From Haliotis rubra (lineage: Eukaryota): 64,000 nt of DNA. Below are positions 45,672-51,600 of the stretch, in pieces. Within the stretch, counting starts at the first letter, position 1. Each line of letters opens with the position of its first letter. Below the pieces are notes generated by a model. It did not search any database, had not been told where the DNA came from, and saw nothing but the letters and a program-made list of their open reading frames with translations. The translations under genes were made by a program, and so were the position numbers. The DNA lies in assembly GCF_003918875.1 (NCBI RefSeq), contig NW_025766470.1, positions 310,001 through 374,000 on the forward strand, read 5' to 3'.

Positions 45672-48600
45672 ATGGGAGATACCGAAGTTGAAAATGAGAT
45701 CTTGGACTACGAGGAGGATGATAATGAAACCACCACAGAGGGGGCCGCTGGTGATGGGCAAGTCAAGAAAGATGTCAAAGGAACATATGTATCCATACAC
45801 AGCTCTGGCTTCCGAGACTTCCTGCTTAAACCAGAACTGCTGCGAGCCATTGTAGACTGTGGGTTTGAGCATCCGTCAGAAGGTATTGTTCTCAACAAAT
45901 TTTGCCACATTTCATGCTGTTAATCACTGTATTGTCTGGTCGATTCGACTATTTACAGATCGCCACAATAAAGCTGAAATATTGCTGAGTGTGGTGTTAA
46001 ACAACAACCAAACAAAACCTTTTGATATATTGAGCTGTTTTGCAAGGACTATTGGAGTTGAGCTGATTTTTATTTGGTGCGTGATAGGGCAGAAATATTG
46101 CTGAAAGTTATGTAAACCCATACTTAGCCTTCAGTTTGAACTTTTGTACAAGCTCATTGAAACTCAAACAGTTATGTTCAATATTTATTCCTTATGTTGT
46201 CGCCAGTAGTCATGTTGACTAAAACTGAGTAAAACTTTCGCCATTGCTTAAAGGAAAAGGTGGTGGGGTAGCCTAGTGGTTAAAGCGTTCGCTCATTACG
46301 TCGAAGACCCAGGTTAGATTCCCCACATGGGTCAATGTGTGAAGCCCATTTCTGTTGTCCCCACTGTGATATTGCTGGAATATTGCTAAAAGCAACGTAA
46401 AACCAAACTCGCACTCTTGAAGGTAAAATGAATCATGAGAACGAAATTATTGTCTGTACATTGGTGGGTACAGCTTTATGGAAGTGTTGTTCATGCCGGC
46501 CCTCCTGTTTCAGTTCAGCACGAATGCATTCCCCAGGCCATCCTCTCCATGGATGTGTTGTGCCAGGCTAAGTCTGGTATGGGAAAGACTGCTGTGTTTG
46601 TGCTGGCGACTCTTCAGCAACTTGAGCCTGTTGACGGACAGGTAAGTCCATGAAATAAATACTGTGTAATGCCTCTTATGCTTGCAGAGACTGAAATTAA
46701 GCATGTTATTGTCTTTTCCTTGTCATGACACTATTAGTATAATATAAAGTCACTGGGTTCAAATCCAATACCAAACCATAAGGACGTGAAAGGTCTCCCA
46801 CTTTTGTTTAGAACTGTTGAATTTGTTTAGTTGTCAGTTTGTTAGCATTAATGTACTACATGACCACCTTGTCTGTAGCTGATAAGCATGTTATGTTAAA
46901 AGTTTGCATGAAAGAAAAGTGTTCCCATGTATATTGTTCTAGAAAACCTCTTCATATTAAGATAATGCAGAAATTGATTTCTCAGTTCGGCACTTGAAAT
47001 TAAAAATTATCATAATGGGAGCCTTGTCATGACCATAATTTTTAGACCTAATAAGGAGATTGTATTTTCAAATCTTATCAGTTAACCTTGTGGAACCAAT
47101 AACCCTTAAGGGGTGGTGGGGTAGCCCAGTGGTTAAAGCGTTCACTCGTCACGCCGAAGACCCTTTGATTCCCCACATGGGTACAATGTATGGAGCCCAT
47201 TTCCTGTGTTCCCCACCATGATATTGCTGGAATATTGCTAAAAGCGGCATAAAACTAAACTCACTCTCAATAACCCTAAATTCTGACCCTTACTAACTCA
47301 TTTATGGTGTAACAAGTGACAACCATGCTTGTCTACTTTCAGGTATCAGTTTTGGTTCTTGCCCACACACGTGAGCTGGCCTTCCAGATCAGCAAGGAGT
47401 ATGAGAGGTTCAGTAAGTACATGAACAACGTCAAGATCGCCGTGTTCTTCGGTGGAATGTCGGTGAAGAAAGATGAAGAGGTGCTGAAGAAGAACTGCCC
47501 ACACATTGTGGTGGGAACCCCTGGTCGTATCCTTGCCCTCACACGTAACAAGACTCTGAGTCTGAAGCACATCAAACACTTCATCCTGGACGAGTGCGAC
47601 AAGATGCTGGCGGAATTGGGTGAGTTAGTTCACCATGTAATCTTTTTCTTTAGTTCATGAAACAAGTCATATTTGTAATAATTTTGTTTTTGTTCACTTA
47701 AGATTAATTTTTTATCTTTCGATTTCCAAAGTTCTAGTGAGACATTAAAAAACTATTCATAGGGAAGGTGTGTATTTAAATAAAAGTTCAGACGTATCTA
47801 GACAATATTTGCTTTAAATGAAAAGGAACAATCTTGATTCAGATATGAGACGAGATGTCCAAGAAATTTTCCGCCTGACGCCACACGAGAAACAAGTGAT
47901 GATGTTCAGCGCCACTCTCAGCAAAGATGTCCGACCGATCTGCAAGAAGTTCATGCAAGATGTAATTACAACACACCCTTCTCGCCAAGTTTCTTTTTCT
48001 TCAGTTGGTTATTGTGGCCATGGCATTGAATGCAATGGCTGATCTAGATGCTGACACACCATGTCAGATTCTGCACCTACATCGCAGCTACGTCTACCGC
48101 CGAGCTCTCCCTGCCATGGCTGTGGCAGCAGTCAGTGCAAGATGCATGGAAAAGACCTACAGCTTTTCCTGGCATTCATGGATCCCCTTCTGTTGCATAT
48201 CAAGCACCAGCATAGTCGCACAATACCTTCTTCAGTAAAACGCGAGTCTCAAATGTAGTTGGGTGGAATATGAAATTAGCACAGTAGTTAAAACATGTCA
48301 CAGGGCTGTTGAAGCATTCATTTACTTATTATAGGGTATAAACATATACATTTCACAAGTAGTCATGTCAGCACAGTGTTATAGAGGCACTCGGAACCTA
48401 AGCTCTCCAAGCAAGGGGAAAGAGTGTTTCTCAAAATTTACTTTCTACAAGATAATAAATATTAACATACAAATCTTTAACCATCAATCCAATTATGTAA
48501 TAACTTCTTTCTTTAAAAAATATTAACAGAGGTACCCTAAACCTTGGCTCTCATAGCAAAGGGACAGGGTGTTTCTCAAATAACTATTCATCCCTATAAA

Positions 48601-51600
48601 CAACATTAAAACATTCCCTTTACATATCTGCATTGGCGTTTCACATTAGCTACTCAGTACCTGAATACTTCTGTCATTTTCACACTTGCCAGGGATTTCA
48701 TAGTAGTGGGGCACACTGAACCCGCGCTCTCCTAGCAAGGGGGACGTGTGTCTCTTGGCTACCTGTAAATGATGTGTTCGCGAAATCAGTTCATGATCAA
48801 TTACTCGTGAGATGGAAATGATTGGTTCGATTTGCAGCATTTATATTATCTGGTTCAACAAACATCTAATAAAATAACACAAAACCTCTTTAATATGAGA
48901 CAATACATGAATATGATAATATATAAGGATAAAATTTGACATCGTGAAAGGTTATAAATTCGTCTTGATGAATGTGTACGATTTCCCAGTACACTGATTA
49001 CAATACATATTCAGATGCAAATACACACTAGGATGGATGTCTTAGACAGTTAATGATTACATTTATTGTACTGAATATGATAAAGTAACACAAGATGCAG
49101 TCAGAAACGTCATTTGCTATTTCAGTAATACGTCTTGCATCCTCAAGAACACATGCACACACACATACTTCATGTTTCTTCGAATGTTCTTGTGAAAGTG
49201 ATATCCCGCGGAAGTTATGGACTGAAGGCACACTAGCACCCTGCGCTCTCAAAGCAAAGGGCATGTGTGTCTTGCCTCAAGATGAACAGACTGTGTGGAC
49301 TGTGAATATTGTTCTGGAGTTCATTCCTTTTGTCATGAGTATGATCATCGGACTGAATCTTCACATACAAGTTCCAGCTTTCTTGGTGCAACAGGTGCTC
49401 CAGCAGTGTGGATCCGCCAGCGTCGTGTTATCGTGATCCGTAGTTATCTCCCCTGGGTGTCCTAGATCCCGGCTGTAGGCATGGATGTGCAAGTATGCTG
49501 TCAGCTGATGTTGACCAAGTTGGTGCTGCCACCTACAGCTAATTTGGTCTTTGTTTCTGATTACATGTTTTTTGGTATTGTGATAAGTTTCAAATTGATT
49601 TTTTCTTATGATACTGGAAATTCAACGCCTTCAAAACTTTTGGCCTTTTATACCTTGTTGGAATGGGACAGATGTAGATTTTCATTTAAGAATATTTACT
49701 AGTGACACCATTAAAAATCCAGAAAAGATTATGCGATCAATTTTTTAAAAGATTGTCAAATTAATGGGACAGTGATCATGCATGGTCAGAGCTTATGTTT
49801 TGTTTGGAACAGTTTTTGTCGACTACTTAGTAAATGTTTGTTTTCCCAAAATGTGTAAGTAATTATGGAAAGAATTTTGTTTCATATGCTTGATTGTGTG
49901 ATGTACATCTAAATGAGAATCCAGTGTTTGAGTGATTGATGTGGTTACAAATAATTGCCTTTCGGGACATCTTTGCCACATACTCCTGTCAGAGTTACGT
50001 GCCAGAAACAGTGTAAATCATGATTTGTCAACATAACACACATTCACATGGGTTTCCCAACTTGGTGAAGTCTGTGACTGATTACTTGGCAAAGTCATAC
50101 CTTTGTGATTTGGGTACAGCTGAATACTGTTCCAAATGTTGTCCAGTGACTTATGGCCTCCTTCCTTGGTTAAGCTGCCATTTTGTCATGCAACTGAAAT
50201 GCTGTTCTCAGCAACGTAAAACCTTTATCAATGGCCTGATTGCGTCATGTCCAGAATCATTACCAGATCCTGATTCCGCAAAGCTGTCAGTGCTAGGCAG
50301 TTGTAATCTTAATGTTTCAGCGAGATCGGGTGGTCAGACTCGCTGACTTGGTTGACACGTCATCGGTTCCCAATTGCGCAGATCGATGCTCATGCTGTTG
50401 ATCACTGGATTGTCTGGTCCAGACTGTTATTTACAGACCGCTGCAATATAGCTGGAATATTGCCGAGTGCAGTGTAAAACTTAACTCACTCACTCACTTA
50501 ATGTTTCAGCACTACGGCACTACTTTGTGGAACAGGGTCAAAACCTGTAAATCAGGTTTATGAAAATGGCTATTGTAAGACGGGAATACAAATAGCTTCA
50601 TTTGGTTCTAAGTACACCGATTATGGAGATCAACACTCATGGACATTGGGAGGATATCCATGGATGAAATATTTCTGTAATGGATGTCCTGCTCACTTGG
50701 ATGTACTTAACGCTTTAACTTGTATTGTTTGCTGATGCATGATTAGTTTTGGAAAGAAATCCAATGATGTAAATGTCATCAAGATTAATGTACTTTGCAC
50801 TAGATAGCCAAGTTCACGTTATTGAGATTTCTGTTCTGATGGGACAAAAGTGAACTTGAATTTGGCTGACTAGTATGTTTTCAGTTGTGGTGTGGCCAAG
50901 TTTGTGTGAAATATCTACGCGTTGGATATTTACAATATTCAGAAATTGAAAAGTGATGTTTTGCATTTAATCAATTAAGGGGAAATAATTGTGGCAACTG
51001 CCCCTTTGGAAAATGTCATTGGGAGTTATGGCCACACCACATGACAAACACCATCAACTGGCTGACGGACGTCTCGCCTTCAACTCCTGGCCTCGTCGGG
51101 CACCTGACCAGCCTCATTGTTTGGCTTCTGACTGGCCTCCCGAGACCCGGATCAGGTAACATGAGGGTAACATGTGTAATGTGTGGTTTTCTAGCCGATG
51201 GAAGTGTACGTTGACGACGACTCGAAGCTGACCCTGCATGGTTTGCAACAGCACTACGTCAAACTGAAGGACAACGAGAAGAACAGGAAGCTGTTCGAAC
51301 TGCTTGACGTGCTTGAGTTCAACCAGGTATTACAACTACGAGTGAAGCAGTTGGAATAACTTATAGCTATTTTCTATGAAGTTACAAGTCTCTTTTCATG
51401 GTGGCTGTGTTTAAATATTTCATAGGGGAAGAGGTTCCAATGTTTGTAGACTGATCAGTACCTGATTGTTTGCCTATATGGATAGTGGGTGTATTCTGAA
51501 TAAGAGGGGTGGTGGGGTAGCATAGTGGTTAAAGCGTTAGCTCGTCATGCTGAAGAACTGGGTTCGATTCTCCACATTGGTACAATGTGTGAAGCCCATT

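Follow-up and report, generated by a model that had tools for sequence, protein, structure and literature searches.

Four copies of a short RNA hairpin lie in one long intron of the gene for the helicase UAP56/DDX39B within a stretch of 64,000 nucleotides (nt) from the abalone Haliotis rubra (contig NW_025766470.1, positions 310,001 to 374,000 of the forward strand; hereafter the window), and the same hairpin is found in the orthologous intron of other gastropods, of bivalves and of a brachiopod. Judging from the sequence comparisons set out below, we take it to be a new, ancient and gene-specific hairpin that acts in cis on UAP56/DDX39B pre-mRNA; it is very probably a functional RNA signal, and its most likely role is to control the splicing of the transcript of its own gene. 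UAP56/DDX39B is central to both splicing and mRNA export and is sensitive to dosage, and how its level is set is, to our knowledge, poorly understood. Structured elements in the regulated introns of RNA-processing genes are a known kind of control; what is new is the hairpin family itself, together with its age, the intron that hosts it and the amplification seen in some lineages.

The copies, termed C1 to C4 and all located on the sense strand of the gene (Table 1), make up one four-member repeat family with spacings of 145, 179 and 519 nt, as seen both with a repeat finder and by direct reading of positions 47800-51400. Their core motif, GCTCTCNNAGCAARGG, occurs exactly four times in the window, a count that stays the same when two mismatches are permitted, compared to a mean of 0.40 in shuffled sequences, where four copies were reached in 0 of 100 cases. 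For each of the four, a common three-tier hairpin is both the minimum-energy and the centroid structure, consisting of a base of 9-11 base pairs (bp), an internal loop, 3-4 bp, a 2x2 loop, 3 bp and a loop of 5 nt, with fold energies from -19.5 to -26.1 kcal/mol and z-scores from -1.4 to -3.0. Antisense folds are weaker for C1, C2 and C3, though for C4 the antisense is slightly stronger (-22.4 vs -21.5 kcal/mol). A first covariance model was built from C1-C3 only, and when the full model was scanned at every position of the window it recovered C4 with 37 bits (E 4.6e-9); no other match in the window fell below E 0.07, the runner-up at that value being the antisense of C2. The initial annotation of this DNA had placed four copies of one fold at these positions on the + strand, and direct reading, folding and the recovery of C4 by a model that had not seen it all bear this out. 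The sequences flanking the copies do not align over 40 bases on either side.

The exons of the window belong to UAP56/DDX39B by their open reading frames (ORFs) and by tblastn, and match Haliotis rubra DDX39B with 100% identity in the segments compared. Seven introns were found between the coding exons (629, 704, 224, 3233, 887, 552 and 683 nt), of which the one carrying the hairpins is the longest, and the exon just upstream of it has 96.6-97.4% nucleotide identity to H. cracherodii and H. asinina. The intron interrupts the protein at residue 245, between the Pfam domains DEAD (70-236) and Helicase_C (274-382), and its retention would yield a protein truncated ahead of Helicase_C, that is between the two RecA domains; the ORF and the Pfam boundaries thus agree with the initial annotation as to the intron following KFMQD, the stop that retention would introduce and the loss of the second RecA domain. 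The 5' splice site, GAU/GUAAUU(A), has non-consensus bases at -1 and +5, and it is identical (GAT/GTAATT) in all nine mollusc sequences, with GTAAAT in the brachiopod.

We searched for the hairpin in ten further loci, which were reached from an exon-derived peptide by way of full-length DDX39B proteins, with the orthologous intron set by its flanking exons in nine other species: Haliotis asinina (L001), H. cracherodii (L002), Gigantopelta aegis (L003), Patella vulgata (L004), P. caerulea (L005), Crassostrea (L006 and L007), the chiton Liolophura (L008), the scallop Mizuhopecten (L009) and the brachiopod Lingula (L010). All covariance-model matches lie on the sense strand and within the KFMQD/PMEV intron, in ten sequences from nine species of gastropods, bivalves and a brachiopod. 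There are four copies in H. asinina, four plus a degenerate fifth in H. cracherodii, three in Gigantopelta aegis, and one each in Patella vulgata, P. caerulea, Crassostrea (20.8 bits), Mizuhopecten (46.8 bits, E 2.8e-11) and Lingula, where the apical half was matched (22.3 bits) and where the match folds as a full hairpin once its flanks are added. In the chiton no copy was found, even with the search confined to its 896-nt intron. The hairpin is therefore present in the orthologous intron of other molluscs and a brachiopod, which the initial annotation had put forward as a check. Pairwise BLAST of the introns gives a similar picture, as the hairpin is the sole segment detectable between distant taxa. 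Beyond this intron, neither the window nor the other parts of the ten loci (about 190 kb searched) gave a match, in line with an element specific to the UAP56 intron. A metagenome scan gave no match to the 21-base apical motif, and among metagenome contigs searched with the two flanking exons, all 80 of the 80 loci kept have these exons fused, being cDNA-like or intronless.

The fifth copy in H. cracherodii (L002, 3644-3692; 29.9 bits) has a basal stem broken at five pairs, and sits in a 67-nt insertion that is missing from the window and from H. asinina. This shows that copies continue to be gained and to decay.

Within Haliotis the hairpins stand out from the rest of the intron. In a three-way alignment, 179 of 194 hairpin columns (92%) are identical, compared to 355 of 756 (47%) in the spacers, meaning the stretches between and before the hairpins (Fisher p = 2e-34). 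The same comparison between P. vulgata and P. caerulea is not informative, since the two, about 88% identical overall, are too alike to resolve conserved islands. Such constraint bears on one alternative, namely that the copies are a functionless repeat, either a short palindromic mobile element or the relic of local duplication that folds by chance. Several dispersed copies with unrelated flanks, a copy number that varies between lineages and one decayed copy in H. cracherodii would all suit a repeat of this type, but the hairpin occupies the same intron across gastropods, bivalves and a brachiopod, has no further copies in the window or the rest of the ten loci, is far better conserved than its spacers in Haliotis, accumulates compensatory changes, and is without visible terminal inverted repeats or target-site duplications. 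We consider a neutral repeat very improbable, and the earlier statement that the element is not a transposon, made on the grounds of its unrelated flanks and the lack of such repeats and duplications, holds with the flank alignment, the lack of extra copies and the orthologous locus.

Covariation was measured on a 15-sequence alignment of all taxa, scored on the proposed 19-pair structure. Standard pairs fill 82% of the cells, and sliding the 3' partner by 1-3 columns brings this down to 28-53%; 10 of the 19 pairs have changes on both sides. The covariation score is 0.337, compared to 0.206 +/- 0.019 for shuffled alignments, and was reached in 0 of 500 of these. RNAalifold, supplied with no structure, predicts the same three helices, with double changes in 7 of 14 pairs. 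These figures uphold the proposal of the initial annotation that the basal stems vary between copies yet remain paired, and place the covariation that it anticipated above the controls. Stem replacements at the level of phyla, which are independent of the Haliotis paralogs, are found as well: the base GGGUGC/GCACCC in Lingula takes the place of the molluscan GGCACAC/GUGUGUC. The oyster has rebuilt its base as GGUGCA/UGCAUC, and the apical helix of Patella and Gigantopelta reads ACU/AGU instead of GCU/AGC. With helices kept by compensatory substitutions, and with orthologous position and strand conserved, the hairpin belongs among conserved structured cis-acting RNAs.

The strand on which the constraint acts can also be read from these comparisons. 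Alignment pair 7-50 is G-U in 12 of 15 sequences, and a broader covariance model (R2) scores 62-71 bits on the + strand against 13-19 bits on the - strand. Because of the G-U pairs and this asymmetry we place the constraint on the sense-strand RNA and not on the DNA, in line with the strand-specific RNA first suggested. An element acting at the level of DNA, for example an intronic enhancer or a palindromic site for a transcription factor, might equally appear as a conserved, partly palindromic sequence within a long intron. However, the G-U pairs of the stems become A-C mismatches on the other strand, and it is the helices that are kept, through double substitutions, and not their sequence; together with the strong strand asymmetry of the model scores, this leaves such an element scarcely credible.

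The alignment further separates the parts of the hairpin. All 15 sequences agree at the two closing pairs and at the loop's first two bases (CU-CUNNN-AG), as well as at one G in the middle helix and at a few positions of the base. The apical helix of 3 bp, with closing pairs CU/AG, closes a 5-nt loop, CU(C/G)(A/C)(A/U), and the middle helix is CC/GG, its second C-G pair being kept in 14 of 15 sequences. Between middle helix and base lies a purine-rich internal loop that varies in length and sequence, and the base itself is a clamp of 8-10 bp whose sequence is free provided that pairing holds; the Patella, Lingula and oyster copies have extra pairing beneath it. Since the apex is invariant while the base changes freely, specificity would reside in the apex and the base would act as a clamp. 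Two earlier claims are modified by this. The apex had been called invariant, which is true within the window, but across species only CU-CUNNN-AG and a few other positions are. Covariation of the basal stem had been noted, and the stem does covary, but it is only a clamp, the conserved determinant being the apical CU-CUNNN-AG.

The history of the copies can be partly reconstructed. Taxa outside Haliotis and Gigantopelta have a single copy, which suggests that one hairpin was the ancestral state. The apex of C4, CCCUGCGCUCUCAAAGCAAAGGGC, differs from that of the scallop at 1 of 24 positions and from that of Lingula at 3 of 24, and on these comparisons C4 is read as the ancestral-type copy and C1-C3 as duplicates of the Haliotis lineage. 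The duplicates would have arisen before the split of the three Haliotis species, because each has its own ortholog in every one of them. The triplication in Gigantopelta may be shared with Haliotis or independent, 50 nt being too short to decide. By its distribution, the hairpin would be no younger than the ancestor that molluscs and brachiopods have in common. The initial annotation had spoken of reiterated hairpins, a description that fits the four of Haliotis but not the element in general, as the array is a lineage amplification and Patella, oyster, scallop and Lingula have one copy.

We compared the hairpin to known classes of RNA. Rfam has no family over the region at E up to 10, nor over the oyster, scallop, Lingula and Patella loci, and at gathering score none anywhere in the window, apart from the tRNA-like and snoRNA-like matches in other introns described below; literature searches on autoregulation of UAP56, DDX39 or Hel25E and on conserved intronic hairpins found no paper describing the element. 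The statement that no described family matches is thus confirmed as far as Rfam and these searches extend. A canonical microRNA (miRNA) precursor is a hairpin of 55-70 nt whose stem, some 33-35 bp long, includes about 11 bp of lower stem beneath the Drosha cut, and its mature arm, above all the seed, is better conserved than the loop. The hairpins of the window are 47-49 nt with 15-17 pairs, most copies are without a lower stem, and the conservation pattern is the reverse of that of a miRNA, with the apex conserved above the arms and the arms replaced in Lingula and oyster. As for small nucleolar RNAs (snoRNAs), neither C/D boxes (RUGAUGA, CUGA) nor H/ACA boxes are conserved in the alignment, and no Rfam snoRNA model falls on the hairpins. 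A miniature inverted-repeat transposable element (MITE) or short interspersed nuclear element (SINE) was rejected as well: there is no copy beyond this intron in the window or the ten gene loci, the flanks are unrelated, target-site duplications and terminal inverted repeats are missing, and the element is only about 50 nt. A K-turn, the binding site of L7Ae, Snu13 or L30, would have a 3-nt bulge and after it conserved tandem sheared G-A pairs, neither of which is seen; the internal loops are symmetric or nearly so and variable in sequence (GGAA/GAAA, AAA/GAC, UGAA/GGAC, UAGCA/CAU). A METTL16-type hairpin would have UACAGARAA in its loop or where loop and stem meet, but the loop CU(C/G)(A/C)(A/U) closed by CU/AG contains no ACAGA. 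Several likenesses, to AACCUAAG of the constitutive transport element (CTE), to CCCUGCGC of the U6 internal stem-loop, to a stretch of 7SK, to a miR-17-like string (in one Gigantopelta copy), to a CTCF motif and to a tRNA anticodon loop, occur in one or a few copies and are unconserved, and were put down to chance.

These tests also bear on another possibility: the intron might yield a small stable RNA, either a non-canonical short-hairpin miRNA or another RNA of about 50 nt, with the hairpin as its precursor and the gene as its host. The hairpin is compact with arms of about 22 nt, clusters of paralogous hairpins are typical of miRNAs, DDX39B hosts snoRNA-like elements in other introns of relatives, and the Patella, Lingula and oyster copies pair further below the base. 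However, it is the apical part that is kept while the arms vary and are wholly replaced in Lingula, opposite to what is expected of a miRNA; the roughly 11-bp lower stem of a Drosha substrate is missing in most copies, the hairpin has some 50 nt, a loop of 5 nt and several internal loops, and neither an Rfam match to a miRNA or snoRNA nor C/D or H/ACA boxes were found. A small-RNA precursor therefore seems unlikely.

The snoRNA-like matches in relatives are as follows. In Lingula (L010) there are two SNORD33-family matches above gathering score in other introns of DDX39B (3462-3540 and 7014-7092). Five C/D-like matches below threshold lie in the scallop locus (L009; 4448-4524, 5109-5185, 5518-5594, 6565-6641 and 7798-7874), and one SNORA19-like match, also below threshold, in an oyster locus (L006; 1235-1350).

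Two further blocks of the intron, one directly after the 5' splice site and one continuing from C4 (Table 1), are conserved among the three Haliotis species to a degree that equals or exceeds the neighbouring coding exons. They are unrecognisable in Patella, Gigantopelta, the bivalves and Lingula, and when the first 140 nt, the last 120 nt and the post-C4 block were compared between distant taxa, only GTAATTA at the donor was shared. Long-range pairing of the two blocks with each other gives no signal (RNAduplex -75.3 kcal/mol, compared to -69.9 +/- 5.2 for shuffles). The blocks may represent a poison or decoy exon specific to the lineage, as its body and flanks, or more regulatory RNA. A candidate 5' splice site, CAA/GUAUGC at 49493, lies 238 nt past the invariant AG of C4 and is kept in the three Haliotis species, and candidate donors are found elsewhere at +165 to +300 (oyster, scallop, Lingula, Patella and Gigantopelta), though only by a heuristic scan.

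These observations lead to the close rival of the explanation that we favour. The CUCU...AG of the apex could be a weak internal 3' splice site of a decoy or poison exon, gated by the hairpin against U2AF and possibly opened by a helicase; a weak donor some 200-300 nt downstream would close a non-coding exon, resulting in a premature stop or in retention, and the 3-5 copies of some snails would be competing acceptors. The invariant positions are exactly a pyrimidine run plus AG, strong conservation in Haliotis begins just ahead of C4 and runs for about 300 nt, and the donor 238 nt past the AG has counterparts in oyster (CAA/GUAUGU at +225), scallop (+225) and Lingula (AUG/GUAAUU at +197). Read by eye in the upstream frame, every candidate exon runs into a stop after no more than a few codons. 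Moreover, intron 6 of human DDX39B contains a decoy exon of 122-369 nt with multiple alternative splice sites, which binds U2AF1/2 and drives retention in a reporter (Parra 2018; PMC6097662). As an acceptor, however, the apex is poor: AG is preceded by A, in some Haliotis copies by U, but in none of the 15 sequences by C, and AAG is a poor acceptor; the pyrimidine run is just 4-5 nt and partly base-paired; AG is followed by C or U where G is preferred; and no conserved branch-point motif was seen. The candidate donors are, at the threshold used, frequent enough for chance, and the candidate exon bodies have no sequence in common between distant taxa. We regard a hairpin-gated decoy acceptor as possible but doubtful on balance; the small-RNA, neutral-repeat and DNA-element explanations are much weaker.

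The explanation we prefer is that of an ancient cis-RNA hairpin governing retention or unproductive splicing of its own intron through a putative factor, which, taken as a whole, we judge to stand slightly better than an even chance. The apex would be a docking site, specific in sequence and shape, at which a nuclear RNA-binding factor engages the transcript before splicing, and docking would set the efficiency with which a long intron with a weak donor is removed. Otherwise, retention or unproductive splicing would result in truncation between the two RecA domains, the outcome being homeostatic control of UAP56 output, with extra copies adding avidity. By the length of the exon downstream of it, 132 nt, and by the exon numbering (counting two 5' non-coding exons, exon 6 would be the one that ends in KFMQD), the host intron is apparently orthologous to human DDX39B intron 6. 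In Table 2 of Pimentel 2016 (PMC4737145) two DDX39B introns are listed as retained in human cells, and by their coordinates the exon that separates them is 132 nt long. Autoregulation via this hairpin is plausible, and more so because its intron appears orthologous to the regulated, retained human intron 6 (PMC4737145, PMC6097662).

Several points weigh against this explanation. Function is deduced from conservation and context alone, and the apex matches no recognition motif among those testable. No hairpin was detected in the chiton Liolophura, which means that the hairpin can be lost or diverge past recognition. The weak donor, though the lowest-scoring of the seven introns (4.0), is not unique, as introns 1 and 5 score alike (4.3 and 4.1) on a weight matrix that is approximate and heuristic. 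Because the 15 aligned sequences share ancestry, with paralogs among them, the covariation counts exceed the true number of independent events. Lastly, the correspondence to human intron 6 rests on exon length and numbering, not on alignment to vertebrate DNA.

A more speculative and rather improbable extension is that the hairpin is a sensor, more than 500 million years old, of the activity of a nuclear helicase or of a 3'-splice-site factor, with UAP56 titrating its own mRNA. The G-U-containing basal clamp would be sized for opening by a DEAD-box protein such as UAP56, and opening would expose the CUCU...AG apex to U2AF-type factors, leading to retention or to a poison exon. The logic would be common with that of the human intron 6 decoy, with copy number tuned in some lineages.

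Table 1. Hairpins and related features of the UAP56/DDX39B gene, in coordinates of the window.
Feature	Position	Strand	Properties	Identical columns in three Haliotis	Orthologs
Hairpin C1	48383-48431	+ (gene sense strand)	fold -20.4 kcal/mol, z -2.95	43/49	L001 4020; L002 3362
Hairpin C2	48528-48576	+	fold -19.5 kcal/mol, z -2.61	43/49	L001 4165; L002 3506
Hairpin C3	48708-48754	+	fold -26.1 kcal/mol; stem extended by 5 bp	44/47	L001 4347; L002 3765
Hairpin C4, read as ancestral-type copy	49225-49273	+	fold -21.5 kcal/mol; 62.5 bits (model R2)	49/49	
Host intron	47962-51194	+	3233 nt, phase 0, between ...KFMQD and PMEV...; splice sites read directly		
Upstream coding exon (MRRDVQE...KFMQD)	47845-47961	+	translation, tblastn		
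Downstream coding exon (PMEVYVDD...EFNQ)	51195-51326	+	132 nt; boundaries read directly		
Weak 5' splice site GAU/GUAAUU	47959-47967	+	position-weight score 4.0 (heuristic matrix)		
First in-frame stop upon intron retention	48040-48042	+	ORF 47818-48042		
Haliotis-conserved block after 5' splice site	47963-48082	+	spacers 47% identical	112/120	
Haliotis-conserved block continuing from C4	49274-49560	+		234/287	

Some other features of the gene were seen along the way. The last 550 nt or so of the host intron (50640-51194) are moderately conserved in Haliotis, with 0.50-0.90 identical columns. Positions 50320-50500 hold a SINE-like insertion that ends in a CTCA-type simple-repeat tail and is absent from H. 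asinina; the aligner placed it against part of a much larger insertion specific to H. cracherodii, a possible ortholog. A tRNA-like match below threshold (25.8 bits), SINE-derived, lies in the next intron at 51511-51579. Further upstream, an ORF at 44429-44560 encoding MDCYVPDVESKIENAE... matches the alternative N-terminus of H. rubra DDX39B isoform X1, so the window also holds an alternative first coding exon.

The hairpin provides a precise, mutable handle on UAP56 regulation in invertebrates, and as a new RNA family its partner can be fished out directly. Its presence from brachiopods to abalone argues that control via this intron predates the split of these phyla, and the amplification from one copy to 3-5 is a natural experiment on element dosage. 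It also illustrates cleanly how a structured RNA could come to light solely because its paralogs covary inside one window.

Among known systems, intronic miRNA clusters similarly have several paralogous sense-strand hairpins per intron, with G-U pairs and compensatory changes, but here conservation is higher in the loop than in the arms, the length falls short, a conserved lower stem is missing and there is no match in Rfam. Negative feedback through an intronic element in the gene of an RNA-processing factor is found in the yeast RPL30 K-turn, the U1A polyadenylation inhibition element (PIE), the introns of yeast DBP2 and YRA1, and intron 2 of CHTOP (PMC5175361). In these cases the binder is the gene's own product, whereas direct specific binding by UAP56 is not expected, because it is a non-sequence-specific DEAD-box protein, and the hairpin does not have the K-turn signature.

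A similar example is the CTE in intron 10 of NXF1/TAP, which also concerns the gene of an mRNA-export factor whose own retained intron contains a conserved structured RNA that decides the fate of the unspliced transcript. In the CTE, NXF1 binds to the internal loops of a long stem, and the element favours the export and translation of a short isoform. The UAP56 hairpin differs in being without the CTE loop motif, as the AACCUAAG seen in C1 is not kept in the other copies. The six hairpins of MAT2A (hp1-hp6) are reportedly bound by METTL16, with one of them said to control a retained or detained intron in a feedback loop. They too recur within the very transcript that is regulated, as conserved hairpins in which the loop is invariant and the stems vary, though their loop is UACAGARAA, a mimic of U6 snRNA, and they lie in the 3' untranslated region, while the loop here is CUNNN closed by C-G and U-A, and is intronic.

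The nearest comparison is to human DDX39B intron 6, likened here by description. The human module is described as a cassette defined by splice sites and U2AF and not as a hairpin, and in the invertebrates only the stem-loop of about 50 nt is deeply conserved. However, the two belong to the same gene family and, as it appears, to the same intron, directly before the 132-nt PME...EFNQ exon, and in both a long intron contains a conserved internal non-coding module and its retention would cut the protein between the RecA domains.

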